Part shown: in pieces, positions 1-17,253 of the stretch | Layout of the letters: each line of letters opens with the position of its first letter | How positions within the stretch are numbered: the first letter of the stretch is position 1 | DNA from: Guillardia theta CCMP2712 | Lineage: Eukaryota; Protista; Cryptophyta | Assembly (NCBI RefSeq): GCF_000315625.1 | Contig: NW_005434468.1 | Span: 1-57,795 of the forward strand | Length of the DNA stretch: 57,795 nt | Direction of reading: 5' to 3' | Program-made: the position numbers and the translations under genes | Notes under the pieces: model-generated | Databases searched by the model: none | What the model saw: the letters and a program-made list of their open reading frames with translations, nothing else | Told to the model about the DNA's origin: nothing

Positions 1-1038
1 GGGTACCGTCGAGGCGAGCTGAGCACCCACTCCAGCTCTTTTTGCTGGAGAGTTCCCGTACTTGCCCCAACAGCGACATACGTCTTCGGGCTCGGCCCCT
101 TGCGACCTCTCTGCCCAGCACCCTGCACGAGCATGCCTGCAAGCGGTTGTACCTCTGCGGCTGCAAGAGATTGCGAGAGCAGCTGAAATCGATAAATCTG
201 AGCGATCTCGGCCGTCGACATTCCTCCGAGAGCTAGGAGCTGTGATAGCTCGGCAAGGCTCCCTCCCTTGCCCCAAGGTCCTCGCTTGGCTCGAAGCTTG
301 AAGGACCGGTCGTGTGCTATGCTCACCTCTGTGGCTCGAAAGACTCTCCCTTCGATAGTGTATTCTCTCCTGCCTTCCCATAGCTCCATGGCTGCTTCAT
401 TCCGAAGGAAGGAGACGGTGACTGAGATGTCGTCTGCTCGTGCTATCTCAGGTCTGTAAGGTGCTTTCCACATGATGGCCTTGTCGACTCCATCGACTGA
501 GTCTACCATGAGACCTAGGTCCATAAGCTTCGTTTTCAACTTTTCTTCTTGTCGAACAAACATCGAGGAAATCCCTAGGAGAGTCATGGAGATGAAGGAG
601 GTCCCCTCGGTGCCTTCGGTGCCGATGTATGTCTCGACATTCTGCTTCTTGGCCTCCTCCATCTGTTGAATAAACCATGCTTTCGACTCTGAGCTCCATT
701 CGCTCAGAGAGTCTTCAAACAGGTCGCGTCTCGCCTGCCGACCTGTCGAGCGGATAACTTCAGCGATAGCGTCGGAGCATAAGCTGTCCGACTATTCGGA
801 TAACGCTTGGTGAAGTTCTTCACCTTCTCGACGAGGTCGGCGGCCTCCTCGACGTGGCCTCCTGAGCGCTCACCCTGCGTGTATTGGCATGATCTCCGAT
901 ACAGCAGGTTGCGAACGCTCTCATCATACTGTAGTACCATGCTTAGAAAGCTGTTTGAACTAGATGAACCTCTTGCTCGCAGCTTCCATCGGTCTCCCTA
1001 CGCGCCGCAGGGCCGCATGCTCTTACTAAGGGCCGGCT
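1..1038 (-). mobile_element. Frameshifted copy (5' part) of a telomere-repeat-associated retroposon-like element; runs off the window
   Basis: Near-identical to 4930-5572. ORF pieces (MVLQYDESVRNLLYRRSCQYTQ..., KAPYRPEIA) are homologous to the 715-aa ORF at 1482-3629. The 5' end abuts (TTTAGGG)n. Confidence 0.7.
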
Positions 1039-1080
1039 CCTAAACCCTAAACCCTAAACCATATTTATTATTATTATTAT
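1039..1080. repeat. Interstitial telomeric repeat (CCCTAAA)~3 next to a (TAA)n tail
   Basis: cctaaaccctaaaccctaaacc at 1039-1060, then ttattattattattat. Confidence 0.9.
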
Positions 1081-3617
1081 GTGAGTTTATTAGAATGCTA
1101 GAATGTTGCTCGGCCTCGTTGTGGGCTTTTGCAATTTGATCCTAGTCTAAAGAGGCGCTCGAGCACTGGGAGTACACGGCCTACAATGCGAACCCTGCTT
1201 CTGAGGCGTCTTTCTACTCTCTACTTCTGCTGTCTTCTCTTGGCTTCCTCAGCCTCAGTCAGGAGAGTTGCCTCTCCTCACCTTGGCCTTCGGTCGCCAC
1301 CTACTCTACCTCCATTCAGCTTCCTCAGCCTCAGTCAGAAGAGTTGCCTCTCCTCACCTTGGCCTTCGGTCGCCACCTACTCCTCCTCCATTCAGCTTCC
1401 TCAGCCTCAGTCAGGAGAGTTGCCTCTCCTCACCTTGGCCTTCGGTCGCCTCCTACCTTCTCTCCTTACCTTGAGCTCAGCTCAAGCTCGGTACGGGCTC
1501 GCCCCGTCTTCTTCCTCGCCCTCGCCTTGCTCTTCCTCCATGTCTTCCTCTTCTTCGCCATCTTCCCTCATCTCCACCCGCAGTCGGTCCTTCTTGTCCA
1601 CCTTCAGCGAGCAGGCCAGCACATGCATCTCTGCGAATTTACTCAGTGCTATGAACAGGAAGCTAAGAGATCGACGCTCTATGTCGTCGCTCTCCGCCTC
1701 CTGCTCAAGCTCAGCAGCTGCCGTTGCCCGTGGCGAGAACGCGCTGCCCCTCCTTGCCTTCTTGCTCTCTCCTTGCACGCGAGTCCAGCGCTTGCTCTGC
1801 AGCCACTTCCCCAGCTTCTCCTTGAGCGCGTTGCGTCCCACTCCCTGCTCCTCTGGCGTCTTCGCCCACTCTCCCAGCGACATGAACTCCAGGCTCCCCG
1901 GAGAGTAGAAGGTGTCGTGGAGGTTGCCAACGGCCTTGTCCAGGACCAGCTTGATCGGCTCGCTCGTCCCCGCCTCGTTCAAAGAAGTTGCATCTTCGAT
2001 GACTGCTGACAGCTCGCTGACGAGCTGCATGTCCTCTTGGCTTGACGGAGATGCTGCCTCCATTGTGATCCTCTCCAGGTCTGTAAACTCCAGCCACTCT
2101 CCCTCGCTCTCCTCCTGTCGCTGCGCTGCGTCGCTGGTGCCCCGCTGACCAGCCGCCTCAGGCTCCTTGTCGAAGCCGACTGCTTCGAGCTTGGTTGCTG
2201 CGCCTTCGAGATAGAAGGGCAGCTCCTTCATCATGCATCGAGCATCCTCCGTGGAGCCGAGGAGGATGCATAGCTTGGACCCGTTCCAGGACTTGGTGTT
2301 CAAATCCTCCTCCATGTCGATGCCTTCAACTTTGATCTCGAGCCTGTTAGCGATCTCCAACAAGACTCTCTTGACTCTTGCGATGGACGTGTTGCCGCCG
2401 TTGCACAGCCCCTCCATCTCCTTCCTCGTGAAGCGACCAGATGCCGCCGTCGACTTGATGATGATCTTGATCTCCTTGCCGTCCTTGCCGCCTGCCTTCT
2501 TCTGCATCCTTGATGCCTTCTTCAACTTATTCCTAGAGACAAAGCGATCGGCTGTCAACTCGACTGCGAGCGCCTCTCTGATCTTCGGGTCCTCGCTGAA
2601 CAGAGTCAGGTGTACTCCCTCCATCGCTTCGCTCTCTCGGAAAGCTCGAAATGCTGTATCATTCGCCTCTGGGCAGCTCGAGGAGACGATCCACTCCACC
2701 TCCCTCTGTCTCCAGATGACGTTGGCCCCTACAGCGACGAAGCCTTTCTGACCTAAGCCTTTGTGGACTTGCTGGCCTGGCGCCCCAGCGACCAGCATGC
2801 CTGCCAGCGGCTGGAGTTGGACCGCTGCAAGGGACTGGCGCAGCAGCTGATAGCGATAGACGGCAGCTATCTCTGCCGTTGTCATGCCGCCCAAGGTTAG
2901 CAGGTGAGTCAGCTCTGCCAAGCTGCCCCCTTTGCCCCAGGGTCCTCTCTTGGCTCGAATCTTGAAAGATCGATCGTGCACGATGCTCACATGTACAGCT
3001 GTGAACTTGCGACCATCGATCGCGAAGTCCTCTCTTCCCTGCCAGAGCTTCTCCGCTTGTGCATTGCGGAGGAAAGAAACAGTCACCGGGATCTCCTCAG
3101 CACTCGCTATCTCGGGTCTATACGGAGCCTTCCACATGATTGCTTTACTCTCTTGCACTGAGTCTACGATCAGTCCGATCTCTTCGAATTTCTTCTTCAA
3201 CTTCTCTTCATGGTTGACATACACCGAGGAGATGCCCAGGAGAGTCATGGAGATGAAGGAAGTCACCTCGTTGCCTGCTGAGGCGGTGTATGTCTCGACC
3301 TTCTCCTTCTTGGCTTCTTCAATCTGCTGCATAAACCACTCTCTGGATGCGTCACTCCATCCAGTCATCGCTTCTTGTAGAAGCTCACGTCGTGCCTGCT
3401 GACATGTCGAGCGGATGGCTTCTGCGATAGCGTCGGGGGTGCATCCCTCCACAGCCTTGCAAGCCTGAGCTGTCCTGCTGTTCGGATAACGCTTCGCGAA
3501 GCTCTTCACCCTCTCGACAAGATCAGCTTCGAGGACAGAGGCATCCACAAGTCCGCGCTGCGTGTATTGGCATGATCTCCGATACAACAGGTTGCGAACA
3601 TTTTCATCATACTGAAG
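1061..3617 (-). mobile_element. Single-ORF, (TAA)n-tailed retroposon-like element, 5'-truncated, flanked by TTTAGGG motifs
   Basis: Minus strand order: GTTTAGGGTT (3627-3618), ORF, 3' UTR with 76-bp repeats, CTAATAAACTCA, (TAA)n, GGTTTAGGGTTTAGGG. No RT motifs seen. Confidence 0.65.
1243..1460. repeat. Three tandem 76-bp repeats in the element 3' UTR
   Basis: gcttcctcagcctcagtcaggagagttgcctctcctcaccttggccttcggtcgcc starts at 1243, 1319 and 1395. Confidence 0.9.
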
Positions 3618-3629
3618 AACCCTAAACAA
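1482..3629 (-). CDS. 715-aa unknown protein, probably ORF1/Gag-like protein of the retroposon; acidic C-terminus
   Basis: Long intact ORF with homologues at 1-940, 4930-5474 and 14040-14888/29860-30340. The native ATG (MVLQYD in other copies) is replaced by the telomeric junction. Confidence 0.6.
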   Translation of the reverse strand: MFRVLQYDENVRNLLYRRSCQYTQRGLVDASVLEADLVERVKSFAKRYPNSRTAQACKAVEGCTPDAIAEAIRSTCQQARRELLQEAMTGWSDASREWFMQQIEEAKKEKVETYTASAGNEVTSFISMTLLGISSVYVNHEEKLKKKFEEIGLIVDSVQESKAIMWKAPYRPEIASAEEIPVTVSFLRNAQAEKLWQGREDFAIDGRKFTAVHVSIVHDRSFKIRAKRGPWGKGGSLAELTHLLTLGGMTTAEIAAVYRYQLLRQSLAAVQLQPLAGMLVAGAPGQQVHKGLGQKGFVAVGANVIWRQREVEWIVSSSCPEANDTAFRAFRESEAMEGVHLTLFSEDPKIREALAVELTADRFVSRNKLKKASRMQKKAGGKDGKEIKIIIKSTAASGRFTRKEMEGLCNGGNTSIARVKRVLLEIANRLEIKVEGIDMEEDLNTKSWNGSKLCILLGSTEDARCMMKELPFYLEGAATKLEAVGFDKEPEAAGQRGTSDAAQRQEESEGEWLEFTDLERITMEAASPSSQEDMQLVSELSAVIEDATSLNEAGTSEPIKLVLDKAVGNLHDTFYSPGSLEFMSLGEWAKTPEEQGVGRNALKEKLGKWLQSKRWTRVQGESKKARRGSAFSPRATAAAELEQEAESDDIERRSLSFLFIALSKFAEMHVLACSLKVDKKDRLRVEMREDGEEEEDMEEEQGEGEEEDGASPYRA

Positions 3630-4126
3630 TTGAATAGCTTTTCGTCCCCAATGACCATCTCGACGTTGTTATACCTGCAGATGCGACTGCAACCATTGAC
3701 AAAATTCCATACAACCGACACGGACTTGTTCATGTTCTTTGCGTCGAACATGATACTCTGCATTCTCTTGGATACGTTCTCCATGTAAAAGTCACGATTG
3801 ATGTCTTCGTCGCCACCAACGACGTTGGTCGACAATGAAACATCTCGGATGCTTGATTCAATACTCATCATAAAGTCAACAACCTGCGAAAAACTGTGTT
3901 TCTTGGTATTTTGAGAGTTGAGCTGGAACTGGACCGTTTCCTTGCCAACAACTTGATTCCACAGTGTATTCTTGACACCGGAGTTCTTCATGATGTCTCG
4001 GATGAAAGAGAATGATCTGTGCATGTCCTGGTCCATGACATTGTTGGTCTGGTACACAGGATGCATAAGTTCATTCACAATGGTGTGGATGATATTCATG
4101 GGTGGTGCAATTGGTAAAGGAGGCAA
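3628..4126 (-). pseudogene. Intronless AT-richer orphan ORF truncated by the retroposon insertion
   Basis: ORF 3506-4126 crosses into the element exactly at TGTTTAGGGTT (codons C-L-G-F). Composition differs from the flanks. Confidence 0.4.
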
Positions 4127-4496
4127 GGAAATGTGTCACCTTATAAAGAGAATTCCCCTCGCATGATTCATTAGGTTCCAAAAATAGTATTCGAATTCGG
4201 CTAAGGGGCAGCGGACGGAGGGAAAACTTGAATGCCACGCTTCGCATTCAAGTTTTTCGGTCCGCTGCCTGGGGCAGCGGACGGAGGGAGGCTGGACACA
4301 TGAACATGGTACCGCTCGAGGTAGTCCTCCTCGCTAGCCTCCTAGTCAGCGGTAGCCGAGTCAGCGGTAGCCGCCCGTGACGGCGGCGACGCCGCAGCAA
4401 TGCCCAAGGACCGGCGTGACCCGACCGATGCCGGGGAGGAAGCAGGCGAGCTCGGACCAGCAGCAAGCACCCCACGGGCCAGTGGTGTCGAGCTCT

Positions 4497-4720: not shown

Positions 4721-4929
4721 TTGAGGATGCGGCGTTTGGTCGGCACTTCGTGCCCGGGCCTGATGACGGACCTGCTGCTGAGGTCTTGGCTCGCAAACGC
4801 GCCGCCACCTATCAGCGCCTCACTATGCAGCTGACGCTGGAGGCGCTCTTGTCTGGTGCGAGGCGCATGACGCCCTTGCGGGCGCAAGCACTTCTCGAGC
4901 CAGCCTCGGAGGACAGCTCCTCCTCGGAC

Positions 4930-5883: not shown

Positions 5884-6496
5884 CCTAAACCCTGAAGTGT
5901 CGCAGAGGAGGCGAGACTCGCTAGACTTCAACTGAAGGCCTTGAGCATCGGCATCCCTGCCGATCAGCTCCTGATCGTCTTTGCACAGGCAGGTGGGCTG
6001 CATGGCAAGAGCGACGGGTGTATCATAGTTGGTCGAGTCGGGGTGAGCCTCTGCCGATGTGCCGAGAGCCGCTGGAGGTGAAGTCGTCCTCGGCGTGCAG
6101 GAGTGGTGACAGGACCTTCGGACGTTCCGAGTTCTCATAGATGCGGGTCCCCGTCATCTCCGCTGATGGACAGCAAGCCTGGGGCGGCTGGCAACATCCG
6201 CACGTCGGAGTGACTCGCTTCGTCCTTGCACTGCGGCAGGTGCGCAGGGGCACGGTATGACCCCGCAACAGAACGGGGACGGTGGAAAACTGAAGGAGGA
6301 CAGGTGGGGGGGGGAAGCAGCCGGGACAAGAGGGTGGAAAGCAGCCGGGGCAAGAGGAAGGAGGGGGGGGATGGGAGGAAGTTGAAGAGCAGGTTGGCCC
6401 CCGGAGACCCAACTTGGCAAGGATCAGGAACAAGACATAACAGGCGCTGTTATCGCGTAAAATCGCTGGCAATGTTAACTTTGCGAGAGGGTGGAG

Positions 6497-7061
6497 CCTT
6501 GATTTCAACATCTTCTTCAATATACACACGAATATTTGAAAGATTGATTTATATATTCAATATCTCCCTTAACATCGAACATTTGTCCACCCTACCCGTG
6601 CGAAAAAAACCTTTGTCGAGCCGGTCGAGATGTCAACATTTAAGTTGGGGTGGGTGGTTGAGGTGAAGTGGGGCACATGGAGCTGGTGGGTAGGGGCATA
6701 TGCGTTTGAGACTAGGAAGAGATATAGAGAATATCGATGATAGGCTAGCAAAAGAGACCTTACTACTAATTTAGTGGGGTCGCTTGGGAAAACATGCCGG
6801 AACTGCGTTCCGCACAGCCTTGATTTCAATATCTTTTTCAATATACACACGAATATTTGAAAGATTGATTTATATATTCAATATCTCCCTTAACATTGAA
6901 AGGTTGTCCACCCTACCCGTGCGAAAAAAAACCGTAGTCGAGTTGCATTGTCACATCTAAGTTGGGGTGGGTGGTAGAGGTAAAGGTGGAGCGCTGGTGG
7001 GTAGGGGCATATGCGTTTGACTAGGAAGAGATATAGAGAATATCGATGATAGGAAGCAAGT
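6497..7061. repeat. ~320-bp tandem repeat, units 1-2; unit 2 is interrupted by the Harbinger-type transposon
   Basis: gccttgatttcaa.atct..ttcaatatacaca.gaat.tttgaaagattgatt... starts at 6497, 6817 and 10074. Confidence 0.85.
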
Positions 7062-9759: not shown

Positions 9760-10034
9760 ATCGCCCGATCGCAGATCGGAGGGAAGGGCTGAAGAGCGGG
9801 AAGGATGGGAGAGGGGGCAGGGCGGTGGGCAGGGGGACGGTTTAAAACCTCGACTTTTAAATTTGACGAACCTACAGTAAATACTAAACGTTCTTATTTT
9901 GCTCGGATTTGAGAAATAGCGATTATCGTACTATCTGTACGTTCATCGTTAAAAACGGTTGTAGTGAAATTTAACGGACTGTCCGTAACATTTGTACCAG
10001 GGAACGTACAGATAGTTGCGTACCGGACACACCT

Positions 10035-10200
10035 AGTGGGGTCCCTAGAACAATGGAACTGCGTTCGAGTCCAGCCTTGATTTCAATATCTTCTTCAATA
10101 TACACATGAATCTTTGAAAGATTGATTGATATCTTCAATATCTCCCTTACGATTGAACATTTGCCTACCCTACCCGTACAACAAAAAACCTTTGTCCTTG
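10035..10200. repeat. Continuation of the ~320-bp repeat (end of unit 2 and start of unit 3)
   Basis: agtggggtc...ggaactgcgttc...gccttgatttcaatatc matches 6773-6930. Confidence 0.8.
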
Positions 10201-10756
10201 CTCACCCTACCCGAGCACCTGTGAAACGATTGGATGTTATACCACCTCAAACACCCTTCACTCTCTCACCCTCATTTGATACTAGTGTCTCACTTATAAA
10301 ATCGAATCGTTCTCACCGGCATGATTCGAGTCCCCTGCCTCCCTCCTTCATTCGACTACCCCTACCCGCTATTTGCCTACAACCCGAAATCTCCACCTAC
10401 CCACACTCTGTCATTCAATATCAAGATTATGGGTGGGGCGGCTTCCACGCACTGCACAAAATGCCAGGCAAGGAGCAGCTGCGATGAGATGCTGTTACCT
10501 TCAGTTACATGCTTGATGATGGAGATGTTTCCTTTGCTCCCCCGCATCTGATCCTTCCATCATTCAACTCCTTTCTTGGCGGCTCCTTCACTTCCTCCCA
10601 ACACTTTTCTTGACCTCCTGGCTTGTGTTTCTCCAGATCCCGTTCCAACCTTATACCATCGACAGCACAAAATGCGTAATTTGAATATCTTCTAGTAGGC
10701 GTCATCTGACTGCGTGTGTTTTACGTTTTGCCGTGAATTGCCATGTTATTGTTCGG

Positions 10757-13700
10757 ATGGCGGTAAGCATCAGTCTGTGAAGCGTATGCTCGTTCAGGGG
10801 ACGATAAACTGACATTTTCTGTGTTTTTTTCGGTTTCTCATCGGATGGGTTGTTGGTTTGTCCGGTCAGATGGTAAGTGATGATAATGAAATATGCGGTC
10901 AGGGAACGATGGGACTGACATGTTTTGGGCAAATTCCTGGTTTTTCCTTGCTTGCATGGGTTAAATTCGTCTTCATAGGGAGTAAGTGTCATATCATATG
11001 ATGCGCTCAGGGGATGATTGTACTGACATTTATTTTGCAAATTCCTGGTTCTCCCTTGCTTACATGGATTGAATTCGTCTTCATAGAGCGTAAGTGTCAT
11101 ATCATATGATGCGGTCAGGGGATGATTTGCTGACATTTGATTTTGTATTTCTCTGTGTTTGGTGTGGGATGGATGGGTTGCTGGATCGGATAGCCGGTAA
11201 GTATCTTGATCACAACATGCGGTCAGGGGACGATTTGACTGACATGCAATTTGCAATTTGATCGGTTATTGCTTGGATGGATGAAACTTGGGCCTGATAG
11301 TATGTAAGTGACGCTTATGAAACATGCTCTCAGGGGATGATTGGACTGACATGTATTTTGCAAATTCCTGGTTTTTCCTTGCTTGCATGGATTAAATTCG
11401 TCTTCATAGGAAGTAAGTGTCATATCATATGATGCGGTCAGAGGATGATTGGACTGACATTTTCTTTTGTGTATATGTCGGTATTTGCTCGAATGTACTG
11501 TGGATGGCGCGGTATAGTCGGTAAGTGACGATGATGAAAGATGTGGTCAGGGGGCGATTGGACTGACATGTATTTTGCAAATTCCCGGGTTTTCCCTTGC
11601 TTGCATGGATTCAATTCGTCATCATAGGGAGTAAGTGTCATATCATATGATGCGGTCAGTGGACGATTCGAGCTGAAATATTACAGGCTACTTTCGATGC
11701 TGGAGCCGATGGGAAGTGTCAGACTTGCAAGAAGCTCGAGAAGGATCACTACACAGAATACAAGTTCTGCTACGTAAGCCTCTCAATGAGCCGCTCAGGG
11801 AATGTTTCGCTGACATTGGTTTTGCTTCTTGTCTGTGTTTGGTGTCGGATGGATGGGTTGCTGGATCGGATAGGGGGTAAGTATCTTGATCAAAATATGC
11901 GGTCAGGGGACGATAGGGACTGACATGTATTTTGCAAATTCCTGGTTTTTCCTTGCTTGCATGGATTAAATTCGTCATCATAGAAAGTAAGTGTCATATC
12001 ATATGATGCGGTCAGGGGACGATATGGCTGACATATAATCTTGGGTTTCTTTTGTTTTCGCTCGGATGGACTGGTGTGATGGAACTGGATAGTATGTAAG
12101 TAATATCTCGATTGAAACATGCGGTCGGTAGAGAGTGACATTCATTTTGCGTTTTTTGGTATGTCTTGATCAACGAATGGCAACATCTGGCATGGATCTG
12201 CTAGTGCTGCGTAAGAAATTGACATCATCACATATTTTCCTGCTGATCTGACCTTGTTTTGATTGCAATATGCAATGGGAAACTCACAGAATGTAAGTCA
12301 TCGATCATGTTTCAAAGCACATGGTCTGTAGAGGTTTTATTTGTATTGATTGGTTGACTCAGTGCGCCAAATCTAAAGGATGGTCCGGGTATGATGAGGT
12401 GTATGATTGGTTTGAGTGATGCGCTTGAGTCTCCTGTGACGTGTGCTGTTGGTAGCACGGGTGCAGACATTGCAAGAAACGGCTACAAGAGAAAGAAACG
12501 AAGAGTGGTGAACAGAATGCACAAGAACTGAAAATCAAGGAAGAGCAGCAGCGCAGAGAGAGGGAGGAGCAGCAGCGCAGAGAGAGGGAGGATCAGCAGC
12601 GCAGAGAGAGGGAGGAGCAGCAGCGCAGAGAGAGGGAGGAGCAGCAGCGCAGAGAGAGGGAGGAGCAGCAGCGCAGAGAGAGGGAGGAGCACGATGTTGC
12701 TTCCCAGGTCCGTTATGCCATGTCTTGTATCTCGATGATGTGTGAATCCCTTTTTTTTCTAAGTTGGGTCAAATCCCATCGTGGAACTTCGAGTCCTTCA
12801 CGGGCCTGCAGCAGATCGGCTCAGGCTCCTTCAAGCTCGTCTACAGGGCTCGGTGGCAGCAGCCGCATGGCAGCAGCGCTGACGTGGCAATCCAACGAAT
12901 CCGAGGCAGCGGACCCACTGGGAGGAGAGAAGAGTTCGAGCAGGAGGTGAAGATCTTCCACCAGCTGGGCCTTCACCCCAACCTCCTTCGCCTCCTCGCC
13001 ACCAGCATCGAGCCGAGCTCCGGCGACTACTGCCTGGTGACTGAGTTTGCTTCCAAAGGCTCTCTCGATGGGATCTTGTCCAACTTTGCCGAGGAGGAGA
13101 AGACGATGAGTCTGCTGGTGCAGCTGCAGGTGGCGAGGCAGATCTGCGACGGGATGGTGCAGCTGTCGCTGCATAAGGTTGTGCATCGGGACCTGGCGGC
13201 GAGGAACGTGCTTGTGTTCAGCCTGGACCCGGAGGATCACCTGGCTGTCAGCGTCAAGATCGCAGACTACGGGCTGTCCATCATGGCCTCGCGCGGGTAC
13301 GGGGAGAGTAGGGCCGGGAGCGTGAGCACGGCAGGCTCGACGGCTCGACCCGTGCGGTGGATGGCGCCGGAGAGCATGAGACGAAGAGAGTACTCGGAGA
13401 TGAGCGACGTGTGGGCGTTCGGGGTGACCATGTGGGAGGTCTGGACGTACGGAGAAGTGCCTTACTGGGCCATCACAGATGACGCTGAGGTGGGACCCAA
13501 GGTTGTAGATGGCGAGCGACTAGCGGCTCCTTCAGCATGTCCGCCTAAAGTTTATTTGATCATGCAAAAATGCTGGAAGGAGAAGAAGACCGAGCGACCA
13601 AGCTTCAGCCAGCTACAGAAGCTGCTTCAGGAGCAGTACGACGAAGCCGTCGAAGTTCGCGGCCAGCAATGCGTCGTCTGCATGGAGCGAAGAGCTGAAT

Positions 13701-13816
13701 GGGCGCTGATCCCCTGCGGTCACAAGTGTCTGTGTGAGGACTGCAAGGAGGGAGCGACGTCGAGGCCATGCCCGATGTGTCGCTCGAGCGCGACGAACAT
13801 CTACAAGATCTACTAG
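10757..13816 (+). CDS. Microexon-encoded N-terminus, Cys-rich region, coiled coil, tyrosine-kinase-like kinase and C-terminal RING finger (18 predicted exons, all introns phase 0)
   Basis: Exons: 10757-62, 10870-72, 10979-81, 11087-89, 11194-96, 11301-03, 11410-12, 11518-20, 11628-30, 11687-773, 11874-76, 11984-86, 12093-95, 12205-10, 12290-92, 12363-98, 12456-707, 12764-13816. They join as MAMGSPYESGATFDAGADGKCQTCKKLEKDHYTEYKFCYGKYCCNCAKSKGWSGYDEHGCRHCKKRLQEKE...(EEQQRRER)n...LGQIPSW... Kinase motifs: IGSGSF, HRDLAARN, DYG, PVRWMAPE, SDVWAFG. RING: CVVC...PCGHKCLC..C...CPMC. Confidence 0.8.
10763..12292 (+). other. Array of ~105-nt related introns separated by 3-nt microexons (appears as a ~108-bp tandem repeat)
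   Basis: Each unit reads AG|NNN|GTAAGT, then a GCGGTCAGGGG box, a CTGAC branch site and an AG-free tract to the next acceptor. Confidence 0.85.
12540..12690 (+). repeat. 24-bp coding tandem repeat (EEQQRRER)x~6
   Basis: gaggagcagcagcgcagagagagg repeats, in frame with the kinase. Confidence 0.9.
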
Positions 13817-15184: not shown

Positions 15185-15405
15185 TCATTGAGCATTCACA
15201 AGATTGAAATCACGAATCATTTTCCGTAACTCTGGAGTGCGAAATTCACGCGTAGACAACCAAGAATCATCCGACGACTTGTCATATCCTTTCCAACGAA
15301 CCAGGTACTGCACACGATTACCTTTCCCACGACGAGCCAAAATACGATCGACTTCGAAATACTGTCCATCGCGTTGAACCAAAGGCAACGGTGGTGGTTC
15401 AATTT
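15185..15405 (-). pseudogene. Gypsy integrase C-terminal chromodomain, separated from pol by the Copia insertion
   Basis: YFEVDRILARRGKGNRVQYLVRWKGYDKSSDDSW. Confidence 0.9.
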
Positions 15406-15825
15406 TGATGTTGCACCCGCATGACGTTACGTCAGTAACGGACATGGCAGCATCATGCGAGTAGTCGTAAGAGGCTACGTACGCTGGCGAGGTGTATAAT
15501 GCTAGAATCGAAGATGTGTACTGGACGTAGACGTACGTACAACACATTGGTATGATGAAAGCATGAGGCTGGTATAAACCGATACACATGTTTACTCATT
15601 GCTGTATTACGGGTTAAGCCTGACCTCGACATATAAGCAACCCATCTTAGACGTTGGCCACGTCATCGGAATGGGATTGCACGAACATTGACGTGTGTTC
15701 TCTTACTGCTGTACATAAACAAATCTAGCTTCATTGTTCATCTGTTCTACTCCTAAGTGCACTATCGCTCAGTTGCTGGACTATACCCGCATCAGGTTAT
15801 AAAAGCCTCGCGTTAAAAGGAACAG

Positions 15826-17253
15826 ATGTCCCCATACCGTCTACAATGGCCGCCAATCAATCAGCCTCAGGACTCGATGATTACAGCAGTAACACCCGAG
15901 AATATGCAAAGACTTGCCCCAGATATCGAGAACTTTATACAGTTCGAGTTGATAGGGCAATACTATGCATACCTCAACTCTGAAGGGAATCCAGAAAACA
16001 TGAGAGCCTACTTCGATTGTCATTTTCCCATCAGAGATACTCAGTCAGAAGAATTACAGGAAAACATGAGACAGAAAAGGAGAGAATTTGTACGAGAAGC
16101 AGATGCTGCTTTGACGCAAATCCTCCACACTGTCTACATGCAATGCCCTGGCAGGATTCAGATTCTGAAAGCCCACATGGAAGAAGAACACAAATCCCCT
16201 GAGACTCCTACAAAGCTTTGCTTAGCTGGGATCAAGGCATGGACAGACTTTAAAAGACTAGACAAGCCAACCGAAGCAACAAAAGCTGAACAGACACTTG
16301 CCAATCTCAAAGAACTAGAGCAAGCAGTAATCTACAACGGAGACTACCAGAGTTACATCCCCAATGTGGTTAGGACCTTGAAGAAATTTGCTTCACAAGG
16401 CAAAGACTGCACTTTTATCTACACCCGTGCTTTCAAAGACGTTATCGACAACCTCAGAGCAATCGACGAAATGGGCGTGCAAGCAGAACTGGGTAGTTGG
16501 ATAACATCTCAAATCCATCGCAACGCAACGGAAGAAAATTTCTTCTACGAAGGAGAGCCACAGATTGAAGATTTTTTGAAATTCCATCAACATATGATGA
16601 ACTTCACTACCAGAGGCACCAAACACCCAATACCTATCCTCCAAGCAGGACAAGATAGCTCTGGCAAGAAATCAACAGACGCACAGTCAGGTCAGAAACG
16701 AAAGGCAAATGCCGTGTTTTCAGCCTCCATGAAACAAAACAATGCACCACAGAAAGTCAGGAAACAACAACAAGCAAACTTTACTGGATGCAAAATCTGC
16801 AAAGAAAAACGACTTCCAGCAAGGATTTCTCTCAGTCATGCTACCAGCGAGCATGACGCATCTAGGATCGGAGAAAGAGCCACTGGCAATAAAACAGCGC
16901 CAACCATGAAGAGGATCACAGGAAGCATTTCAACCGGTTTTCAGACAAGGGCAGGAAGATCCGCAAAATTTACCGCCAAGAGTCATCGCTCGTCGAACCC
17001 AAACCGTTCAAACGAGGAGAGCGGACAATACCCGAAGTCAAAATACAAGCAAACAGTCAGCATCGACAAGAAAGTCCTCGTGAACCTCACAAAAGCCCTG
17101 CAAGAAGCCACCTCTACCGACCAAACTGAAACCCAAGAATCAGTTCAAGAATCACCTAGCAGTGATGAAGACGAATCCGATGAACCGTCCCCATCTCGAA
17201 CACCTCCGAAACGACTGAAAGAAGTGTACAAGAGACGTTCCGAGGCACACTAG
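15826..17253 (+). CDS. Copia Gag-like protein
   Basis: 475-aa ORF directly after the LTR/PBS, with a CKIC...H...H zinc-knuckle-like motif. Confidence 0.75.
   Translation: MSPYRLQWPPINQPQDSMITAVTPENMQRLAPDIENFIQFELIGQYYAYLNSEGNPENMRAYFDCHFPIRDTQSEELQENMRQKRREFVREADAALTQILHTVYMQCPGRIQILKAHMEEEHKSPETPTKLCLAGIKAWTDFKRLDKPTEATKAEQTLANLKELEQAVIYNGDYQSYIPNVVRTLKKFASQGKDCTFIYTRAFKDVIDNLRAIDEMGVQAELGSWITSQIHRNATEENFFYEGEPQIEDFLKFHQHMMNFTTRGTKHPIPILQAGQDSSGKKSTDAQSGQKRKANAVFSASMKQNNAPQKVRKQQQANFTGCKICKEKRLPARISLSHATSEHDASRIGERATGNKTAPTMKRITGSISTGFQTRAGRSAKFTAKSHRSSNPNRSNEESGQYPKSKYKQTVSIDKKVLVNLTKALQEATSTDQTETQESVQESPSSDEDESDEPSPSRTPPKRLKEVYKRRSEAH

Follow-up and report, generated by a model that had tools for sequence, protein, structure and literature searches.

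We analyzed a 57,795-nt stretch of DNA from the cryptophyte alga Guillardia theta CCMP2712 (RefSeq assembly GCF_000315625.1, contig NW_005434468.1, positions 1 to 57,795), which we call the window. Positions 10870-12095 of the window are the 5' coding region of an expressed gene for a tyrosine-kinase-like (TKL) kinase with a RING finger, and 12 codons of this gene are each a separate 3-nt exon. These one-codon exons are spliced into the mRNA; each lies at the center of a cassette; the cassettes join at a TCAG inside a conserved box; and the codons have diverged more than the intronic sequences that flank them. We propose that cassettes are exchanged between gene copies at TCAG and that diversifying selection acts on the loop residues that they encode. 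Taken as a whole, this explanation is probably correct. Coordinates refer to the window, and features are on its forward strand unless noted otherwise.

One-codon exons in an expressed kinase-RING gene

The 3-nt exons form two runs, of eight and then three, with a spacing of about 108 bp, and a 6-nt exon and one more 3-nt exon lie downstream. The first run is ATG (Met, 10870-10872), GGA (Gly, 10979-10981), AGC (Ser, 11087-11089), CCG (Pro, 11194-11196), TAT (Tyr, 11301-11303), GAA (Glu, 11410-11412), TCG (Ser, 11518-11520), and GGA (Gly, 11628-11630). The second run is GGG (Gly, 11874-11876), AAA (Lys, 11984-11986), and TAT (Tyr, 12093-12095). The 6-nt exon is TGCTGC (Cys-Cys, 12205-12210), and the last 3-nt exon is AAT (Asn, 12290-12292), whose introns on either side are not part of the repeat. 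All 12 of the 3-nt exons and the 6-nt exon are preceded by YAG and followed by GTAAG.

We mapped transcript contigs from three independent data sets to positions 10300-12900. All of the microexons were found, in order, within contigs of the three studies, at depths of 168-3969. (The first exon, ATG, was identified from the RNA letters behind 10762 and from its AG-NNN-GTAAG site.) In all three studies, the contigs read GCG, then ATGGGAAGCCCGTATGAATCGGGA, then GCTACT, and they read TAC, then GGGAAATATTGCTGCAAT, then the exon at 12363. A single contig is continuous over 10646-10762, continues with ATGGGAAGCCCGTATGAATCGGGAGCTACT, which is the eight triplets, and then enters the exon that starts at 11687. 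Similarly, the RNA joint from 11774 to 12363 holds GGAAATATTGCTGCAAT, which is GGG, AAA, TAT, the 6-nt TGCTGC, and AAT; the depths were 650, 168, and 3969 in the three data sets. When the exons are joined, they form an open reading frame that runs through the kinase and RING domains. One partly spliced contig retains the first two introns although the six downstream ones are already gone, so the introns are spliced out independently of each other.

The protein has N-terminal Cys motifs, then a coiled coil, then the TKL kinase domain and the RING finger. The kinase (PF07714, 227.7 bits) and the C3HC4 RING (PF13920, 47.5 bits) are both above Pfam's curated cutoffs. The N-terminal Cys motifs and the 87-nt exon between the two runs have no significant match in Pfam.

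The triplets are also free of stop codons. We used 182 repeat units for this test and for the tests of flank pairing and triplet divergence below. There were no stops among the 182 triplets, as compared to 12.7 expected from position-specific base frequencies (P about 3e-6), while reading the chains in the other two phases gave 2 and 10 stops. Another 58 triplets, from four other arrays, also contained no stops. The lengths of the introns have no bias towards multiples of three (55/50/48). Given the open frame and the absence of stops, the triplets are probably translated in frame, and peptides such as MAMGSPYESGATFDAGADGK are predicted to be encoded by the arrays. Among the encoded residues, Gly, Tyr, Arg, Ala, Leu, Asp, and Trp are abundant.

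The repeats are exon-centered cassettes that join at TCAG

A 108-bp repeat at 10893-11676 was detected with Tandem Repeats Finder. Each repeat has one AG-NNN-GTAAG site and a box, GCGGTCAGGGG, at about +20 to +33 of the intron. Ten copies of the box with at most two mismatches lie between 10895 and 12018; they start at 10895, 11003, 11111, 11219, 11326, 11434, 11543, 11652, 11899, and 12008. A preliminary description of this DNA had placed the box at 12 positions, which include all ten of these, but its other two (11791 and 12121) are degenerate. After each box there is a spacer of 10-12 nt and then a CTGAC motif that resembles a branch point. Beginning from the box, a cassette consists of this spacer, the CTGAC motif, a tail of about 55 nt that is free of AG and ends in YAG, and the codon; after the codon come GTAAGT, a type-specific 5' half of about 20 nt, and the next box (ATGCGGTCAG). 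Most types of 5' half contain a perfect palindrome of 8-10 nt (ATCATATGAT, AGCATATGCT, GCATATGC, or TTGATCAA) about 10 nt before the box; an example is at 10988-10999.

The preliminary description also sorted the cassettes into types. We located type A cassettes at the exons GGA (10979), AGC (11087), GAA (11410), GGA (11628), and AAA (11984), and type B cassettes at CCG (11194) and GGG (11874), as had been described. A third type, with two TAT units, was less convincing: both of the TAT exons are present, but their flanks are merely loosely similar to each other. (The 80 bases that flank the first TAT, at 11301, are identical to those of a TAT unit on another contig, C228.)

To describe how the halves of the introns are related, we compared two segments of each unit: U, which is the final 58 nt of the intron before the exon, and D, which is the initial 22 nt of the intron after it. 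Across the 182 units, similarity in U was correlated with similarity in D if the two lie around the same exon (r = 0.51, Mantel p = 0.001, 999 permutations), but hardly so if they belong to the same intron (r = 0.096, Mantel p = 0.003, 999 permutations). Both correlations are unchanged if only pairs from different loci are considered. If we chose the nearest relative of each unit by its U, then the D across the exon was 0.91 identical, while the D of the same intron was 0.742 identical, as compared to 0.747 for random pairs. Similarity thus follows exon-centered units instead of whole introns, as had been suggested.

The limits of the unit lie at the box. Among 73 close pairs of units, identity exceeds background between about -90 and +27 relative to the exon; beyond these limits, it does not. 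Variable sites up to TCAG-1 are associated with the type of D only; sites from TCAG+6 on have no association with D and a growing association with the type of U. Blocks that are at least 95% identical between loci have 73 of their 95 starts (77%) and 98 of their 136 ends (72%) at offsets of +18 to +44, which is a 27-nt window around the box, or a quarter of the period. These results bear out the earlier claim that unit types switch at the box, and they place the point where cassettes join at its TCAG.

Comparisons between loci agree with this. The ROCO-TIR reading frames of loci L034 (contig C23) and L037 (C149) have a synonymous divergence (dS) of just 0.009, but their arrays are unrelated; the near-identity starts at the box of the last intron. 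At two unrelated loci, L041 (C167) and L042 (C21, where it is present twice), there are two-unit blocks with CTCAG at both limits. The host sequence reads CCCCTCAG directly before these blocks and CG directly after them, and the L041 block is about 99% identical to the array of locus L036 from CTCAG onward. These ectopic blocks with CTCAG at their limits hint at something more precise than general homology. As for the process at the box, unequal crossover (as inferred in the preliminary description), gene conversion between paralogs, template switching at the inverted repeat GTCAG..CTGAC, and site-specific insertion after TCAG would fit our data equally well.

Two of the loci have other unusual features. 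In L042 (G000:C21:782000-791500), the two-unit block (TAT, AAC; at 2940-3155 and 6455-6670) lies about 90 bp upstream of an ATG, and the gene below it encodes an N-terminus that resembles a signal peptide; the whole 3.5-kb segment is tandemly duplicated. In L040 (G000:C147:12000-21000), the array ends at 4740-4790 in a palindromic junction, ATGCGGTCAC followed by CGCAT, and then an inverted half of a cassette. This looks like a rearranged or dead copy.

Codons diverge more than their intronic flanks

The preliminary description held that the triplets are more variable than their flanks, and our measurements confirmed this: per site, divergence is 6-11 times faster in the triplets. Among 41 type A units, nucleotide diversity is 0.128 in the flanks and 0.58, 0.60, and 0.62 at the three codon positions, for a ratio of about 4.7. 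In 50 disjoint pairs of units, the divergence per site is 0.240 in the triplets and 0.042 in the flanks, or a ratio of 5.7 (P 2e-16). If we consider just the pairs that are at least 95% alike, then the corresponding values are 0.185 and 0.017, for a ratio of 11. There are even pairs with different codons (GAA/GGA and GGG/GGA) whose 80 flanking bases are all identical, and many type A copies with other codons have their closest match in the flanks of the GAA unit at 11410, which is itself of type A. Codon divergence grows along with the divergence of the flanks. Some types are fixed: the codon is GCG in 8 of 8 units of one type and TGG in 4 of 4 units of another.

The diversity of the flanks of the first intron is 0.075, and dS among the paralogs is 0.10-0.27. 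The diversity of the type A flanks is similar to this dS, so the flanks seem to be roughly neutral and the codons seem to change faster than that. The flanks also lack strong constraint in that older arrays (see below) keep the same architecture with flanks that are 68-76% identical. Diversifying selection on the codons would be the best explanation for their excess of change. We also considered whether adjacent identical triplets could be target-site duplications, but by our estimate their frequency is about what codon usage predicts.

Splicing of the microexons

Across 153 introns of the arrays, intron length is 104.7 ± 3.7 nt. The CTGAC-type motif follows the 5' splice site by 45.6 nt and precedes the 3' splice site by 59.4 ± 3.3 nt. 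The stretch from the motif to the 3' splice site is free of AG in 139 of 144 introns, as compared to 2.4 AGs expected per tail. In the ordinary introns of the window gene (56-57 nt), by contrast, about 11 nt separate the motif from the 3' splice site.

This anatomy suggests how the exons could be joined. Each intron of about 105 nt would be removed singly, with a branch point that precedes the 3' splice site by about 59 nt and with the first AG after the branch point as the acceptor. With this spacing, the branch-point complex would stay about 62 nt away from the next intron's 5' splice site, despite an exon of just 3 nt. In other words, the distal branch point may be a spacing device, as has been proposed for vertebrate microexons (PMC12871342).

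We did not find any sign that RNA structure is involved. The predicted folds of the 153 introns and of 124 exon-centered units were no better than those of dinucleotide shuffles (mean z of -0.19 and -0.18), so there is no support for base pairing of one flank of an exon with the other. A search of Rfam with positions 10000-13000 gave no match at E ≤ 1.

A gene family with arrays of one-codon exons

We searched the genome (87.1 Mb in 669 contigs) for similar arrangements. Two chained 3-nt exons occur 206 times, as compared to 75 for a reversed control pattern, and three chained 3-nt exons occur 128 times, as compared to 11. The longest runs have 13 exons in the main family and 19 on contig C116.

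At least ten other contigs have the 5' module of the main family, with 90-95% conservation. In order, it comprises exon 1 (which contains an ATG and encodes a C-x2-C motif), an intron with GC-AG ends, an exon 2 of 39 nt, another intron, a GCG microexon, and the arrays, which alternate with exons of about 87 nt that encode C-x2-C..H..C. The genes below this module have large 3' open reading frames for Roc-COR and TIR, for kinase and PARP, or for kinase and RING, and Pfam identifies the TIR, Roc, COR, PARP, kinase, and RING domains in the family. Type A has 59 matches on about 17 contigs, nearly all of them in this one family. The published gene models for the family begin at internal methionines and miss the arrays, and no protein in the database that we searched has an N-terminus encoded by an array.

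Pattern searches also located arrays on contigs C116, C70, C92, and C75. These appear to be older: the one-codon architecture and the distal branch-point motif are retained, but the flanks are just 68-76% alike and the box is degenerate. The architecture as such therefore does not depend on the box, and over time the flanks can diverge freely. A scan of metagenomes with a pattern for the box and the branch-point motif gave no hits.

The closest kinase-RING paralog of the window gene, in L048 (G000:C89:341000-350000), is 91% identical and has no array. The only trace of one is the remnant of a type A 3' half at 4300-4350, in the intron before the coiled-coil exon, and the paralog has a different, long 5' open reading frame. 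Several of the paralogs in loci L031-L037 share more repeated sequence about 1-2.5 kb upstream of exon 1 (such as stretches that resemble an open reading frame, 'SVSRHCKAP..', and 24-bp repeats), so the duplicated segment reaches well past the start of the gene.

Proposed explanation and alternatives

We propose that gain, loss, and exchange, within a paralog as well as between paralogs, involve whole cassettes, with the junctions at the TCAG of the box. Cassette exchange would then explain why paralogs with near-identical effector domains bear unrelated strings of codons. Diversifying selection would act on single residues of variable loops, which would lie between small Cys/His motifs at the N-terminus of signaling or cell-death-type proteins (ROCO-TIR, kinase-PARP, and kinase-RING). 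All of this variation is in the germline, between gene copies; the assembly and the RNA contigs gave no indication of somatic diversification. We infer that the family has a role in sensing. The immune-type label is suggested only by the effector domains (TIR, Roc-COR, PARP, kinase, and RING) and by the abundance of codons for Gly, Tyr, Arg, Trp, and Asp. A more ambitious version seems unlikely to us: in a heritable system of codon cassettes, a site-specific process at TCAG (recombination, template switching, or insertion) would add, remove, or swap single residues in the loops of immune or cell-death-type sensors, and positive selection would then retune each codon. As every exon keeps the reading frame, such an architecture could also permit combinatorial skipping of exons.

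Several points weigh against our proposal. The branch point is a motif match. The 5' end of the window gene is atypical, as the acceptor before GCG is gone and the frame from exon 1 is stopped (see below). The RNA evidence consists of assembled contigs, which are blind to rare isoforms, and just three RNA fragments were seen for the arrays of the paralogs. Positive selection is argued from the ratio of rates. Gene conversion of the flanks, together with selection that keeps the codons apart, could mimic diversifying selection.

The excess of codon change might arise with no positive selection at all, if the flanks are held back by splicing constraint or by conversion, or if the codons are unconstrained and older than the flanks suggest. 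We consider this unlikely, although some points favor it: 3-nt exons plausibly need strong flanking signals, the comparison of L034 and L037 shows that paralogs are mosaic and hence that conversion is frequent, and the three codon positions are about equally diverse. However, the diversity of the flanks (0.128) is similar to the dS of paralogs (0.10-0.27) and to the diversity of the first-intron flanks (0.075), and older arrays keep the architecture with far more diverged flanks and no box. Also, conversion would require tracts that end at each of the two splice sites and yet keep the two halves paired, and codon divergence rises with the divergence of the flanks. Another alternative, which we judge to be rather improbable, is a small mobile element that inserts site-specifically after (C)TCAG within introns and brings a 3' splice site, a codon, and a 5' splice site; each insertion would recreate the target, and arrays would grow in this way. 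This would account for the two-unit blocks of L041 and L042 that start and end exactly at CTCAG, for the 99% identity of the L041 block to the L036 array from CTCAG, for a switch in linkage that is confined to a few bases at TCAG and does not span the whole conserved core, and for the inverted junction at the box where the L040 array ends. But the 5-nt GTCAG/CTGAC pair is the only terminal inverted repeat, a transposase is absent, the type A copies are confined to about 17 contigs and almost all to one gene family, and microhomology-mediated template switching explains the paired CTCAG equally well. The codon would also be copied along with its flanks, which leaves the codon excess unexplained. 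As for specific kinds of element, a Helitron or an IS200-like element would share just the TCAG junction and the 5-nt inverted pair; we found no 5'-TC..CTRR-3' ends and no enzyme.

The remaining alternatives fit the data poorly. If the diversification were programmed, by somatic rearrangement at the box or by combinatorial skipping of microexons, then one cell line would hold many variants. All of the units keep the frame, so any subset could be skipped, and the junction is precise and the effector domains are of immune or cell-death type. Still, the contigs of three studies show the window gene in its full-inclusion form only, although contigs drop rare forms; the genome assembly and the RNA agree; and no rearranged forms were seen, though rare ones would be beyond these data. 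This makes programmed diversification very improbable. Even less credible is the introner model, in which copies of a transposable intron were inserted between the codons of a once-continuous exon. The many near-identical introns of about 105 nt with strong splice signals are as this model would predict. But the two halves of an intron are no more alike than random (0.742 vs. 0.747), the shared blocks are bounded inside the introns instead of at the splice sites, and the copies are confined to one gene family. The whole intron is not the repeated unit, so the preliminary description's argument against introner insertion holds up. Neither of the two outcomes that it had named as refuting (a single phylogeny for both halves of an intron, or triplets that vary no more than their flanks) was borne out. 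Finally, a 108-bp tandem repeat could be a non-coding satellite or an array of RNA genes within one long intron. We put practically no weight on this explanation, as every triplet is present in mRNA contigs, the triplets contain no stop codons, and neither a match in Rfam nor a folding signal (mean z of -0.19) was found.

The 5' end and other parts of the window gene

Exon 1 of the family's 5' module is at 10429-10467 in the window. Its ATG is in phase with the triplets, and it encodes MGGAASTHCTKCQ, where the paralogs have MPYNCxxCQ. It is followed by a 169-nt intron with GC-AG ends (10468-10636; donor GCAAGG), as seen from the sequence and from an RNA joint in runs X1 and X4. (The joint, from 10463 to 10633, can be moved by 4 nt and is equivalent to 10467 to 10637.) Exon 2 (10637-10762) is extended in the window gene, as shown by the comparison to paralogs and by the unbroken RNA contig over 10646-10762, which continues with ATGGGAAGC.

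In the paralogs, exon 2 is spliced at the equivalent of 10675, before GTAATT, and GCG is a separate microexon. In the window gene, the acceptor AAG before GCG is now ATG (10757-10759; A>T at 10758). This change destroys the acceptor, so the former intron 2 is kept within exon 2. The retained intron places an in-frame TGA behind the ATG of exon 1, and ATG-GCG has been created at 10757-10762. Thus, one base change at 10758 led to the loss of a splice site and to a new in-frame start directly before the array. In the window gene, ATG-GCG-ATG-GGA.. from 10757 is the likely start. We rejected the conserved ATG within 'AAAATGC' in exon 2, which is out of phase and runs into stops; the in-phase ATG is that of exon 1. 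The N-terminus is either MGGAAS.. or MPYNC.., with Cys motifs, and kinase, RING, ROCO, TIR, or PARP domains come after it. A second RNA joint leads from the donor of exon 2 at 10675 to 10878, a position within the intron that follows the ATG microexon. Perhaps the damaged 5' end undergoes an alternative or dead-end splice here.

The intron at 10763-10869 is the first to contain a box-like element, which is TCGTTCAGGGG and lies at 10790; the donor of this intron is GTAAGC, and it has the CTGAC motif and ends in CAG. The first run of microexons is followed by a 56-nt intron (11631-11686) with a 5' half, a box, and a CTGAA motif, and the 3' splice site is about 11 nt further on. It is an ordinary short intron, without the long tail. 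The 87-nt exon (11687-11773) encodes ATFDAGADGKCQTCKKLEKDHYTEYKFCY, which contains the C-x2-C..H..C motif that recurs between runs in the paralogs. Downstream of the microexons are a 36-nt exon (12363-12398; CAKSKGWSGYDE) and an exon with a C-x-H-C motif and a coiled-coil-like (EEQQRRER)n stretch (12456-12707); RNA contigs support both of these exons and the 87-nt exon. The last exon (12764-13816) encodes the TKL kinase domain and the C3HC4 RING and ends with a stop codon. The (EEQQRRER)n stretch, between the Cys motif and the kinase, is encoded by a 24-bp repeat at 12539-12691 (6.4 copies, 97% identity), and paralogs have similar repeats of different lengths.

Outside of the gene, an open reading frame on the reverse strand at 15185-15589 has a chromo domain (PF00385, E = 8e-9) and could be the tail of a chromovirus-type retroelement. 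It adjoins an open reading frame of 475 amino acids (15826-17253) that has no match in Pfam.

Relation to known systems and significance

We searched a library of papers for microexons or introners of Guillardia and other cryptophytes, and for arrays of 3-nt exons, and saw no account of such an architecture. Introners are transposon-derived introns that are reported from Micromonas, Aureococcus, and dinoflagellates (Huff et al. 2016; Gozashti et al. 2022). The arrays resemble them in that an alga has short introns in many nearly identical copies, with strong splice signals, but the unit in Guillardia is centered on the exon, it is found in one gene family, and it lacks typical terminal inverted repeats or a target-site duplication. 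In venom genes (snake PLA2 and conotoxins), the exons evolve faster than the conserved introns, which is read as diversifying selection. There, too, coding positions outpace the adjoining introns in a duplicated family; but whole exons are affected, while in Guillardia a single codon is isolated between two splice sites. Borrelia vlsE and the assembly of lamprey VLRs (variable lymphocyte receptors) involve somatic or clonal gene conversion into an expression site. They share short cassettes with conserved junction sequences that are swapped between copies, but in Guillardia only germline differences between paralogs were seen.

The nearest known kind is the family of micro-exon genes (MEGs) of Schistosoma mansoni, which have exons of 6-81 bp (mostly 15 bp), introns of 0.1-5 kb, secreted products, and alternative splicing (PMC10526429). 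In both systems, the coding sequence is largely made up of tiny exons whose lengths are mostly multiples of three, the genes form a multigene family that is hard for gene predictors, and there is a link to protein variation (PMC10526429). Runs of symmetric exons, a trait of the MEGs, are present in Guillardia (8 and 3 in the window gene and up to 13-19 elsewhere). However, the Guillardia exons are exactly one codon, the introns are about 105 nt and repeat-like, the domains are those of cytosolic signaling proteins, and the variation is between gene copies. The secreted product with a signal peptide that is typical of MEGs was not found for the window gene or its paralogs, and the two systems are not homologous. 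Vertebrate neural microexons have an extended region between the branch point and the 3' splice site, which is proposed to relieve a steric clash during spliceosome assembly (PMC12871342). The similarity is that a tiny exon follows an unusually long distance from branch point to 3' splice site; but the vertebrate microexons are single, regulated, and SRRM4-dependent, while those of Guillardia are up to 13-19 in a row and apparently constitutive, with a branch point known just as a motif.

The arrays imply that the spliceosome can routinely join long chains of one-codon exons. With 153 near-replicate introns and a fixed geometry of 46 + 59 nt, they are a natural test bed for the limits on exon size. 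Duplication and exchange work on units of one amino acid each, and the rate of coding change can be read against each codon's own intronic flanks. The N-termini of about twenty signaling or cell-death-type proteins of this model alga are wrong in the databases, because the published models leave out the arrays and take an internal methionine as the start. If the immune interpretation is true, then the cassettes would be a new route to receptor diversity in a protist.

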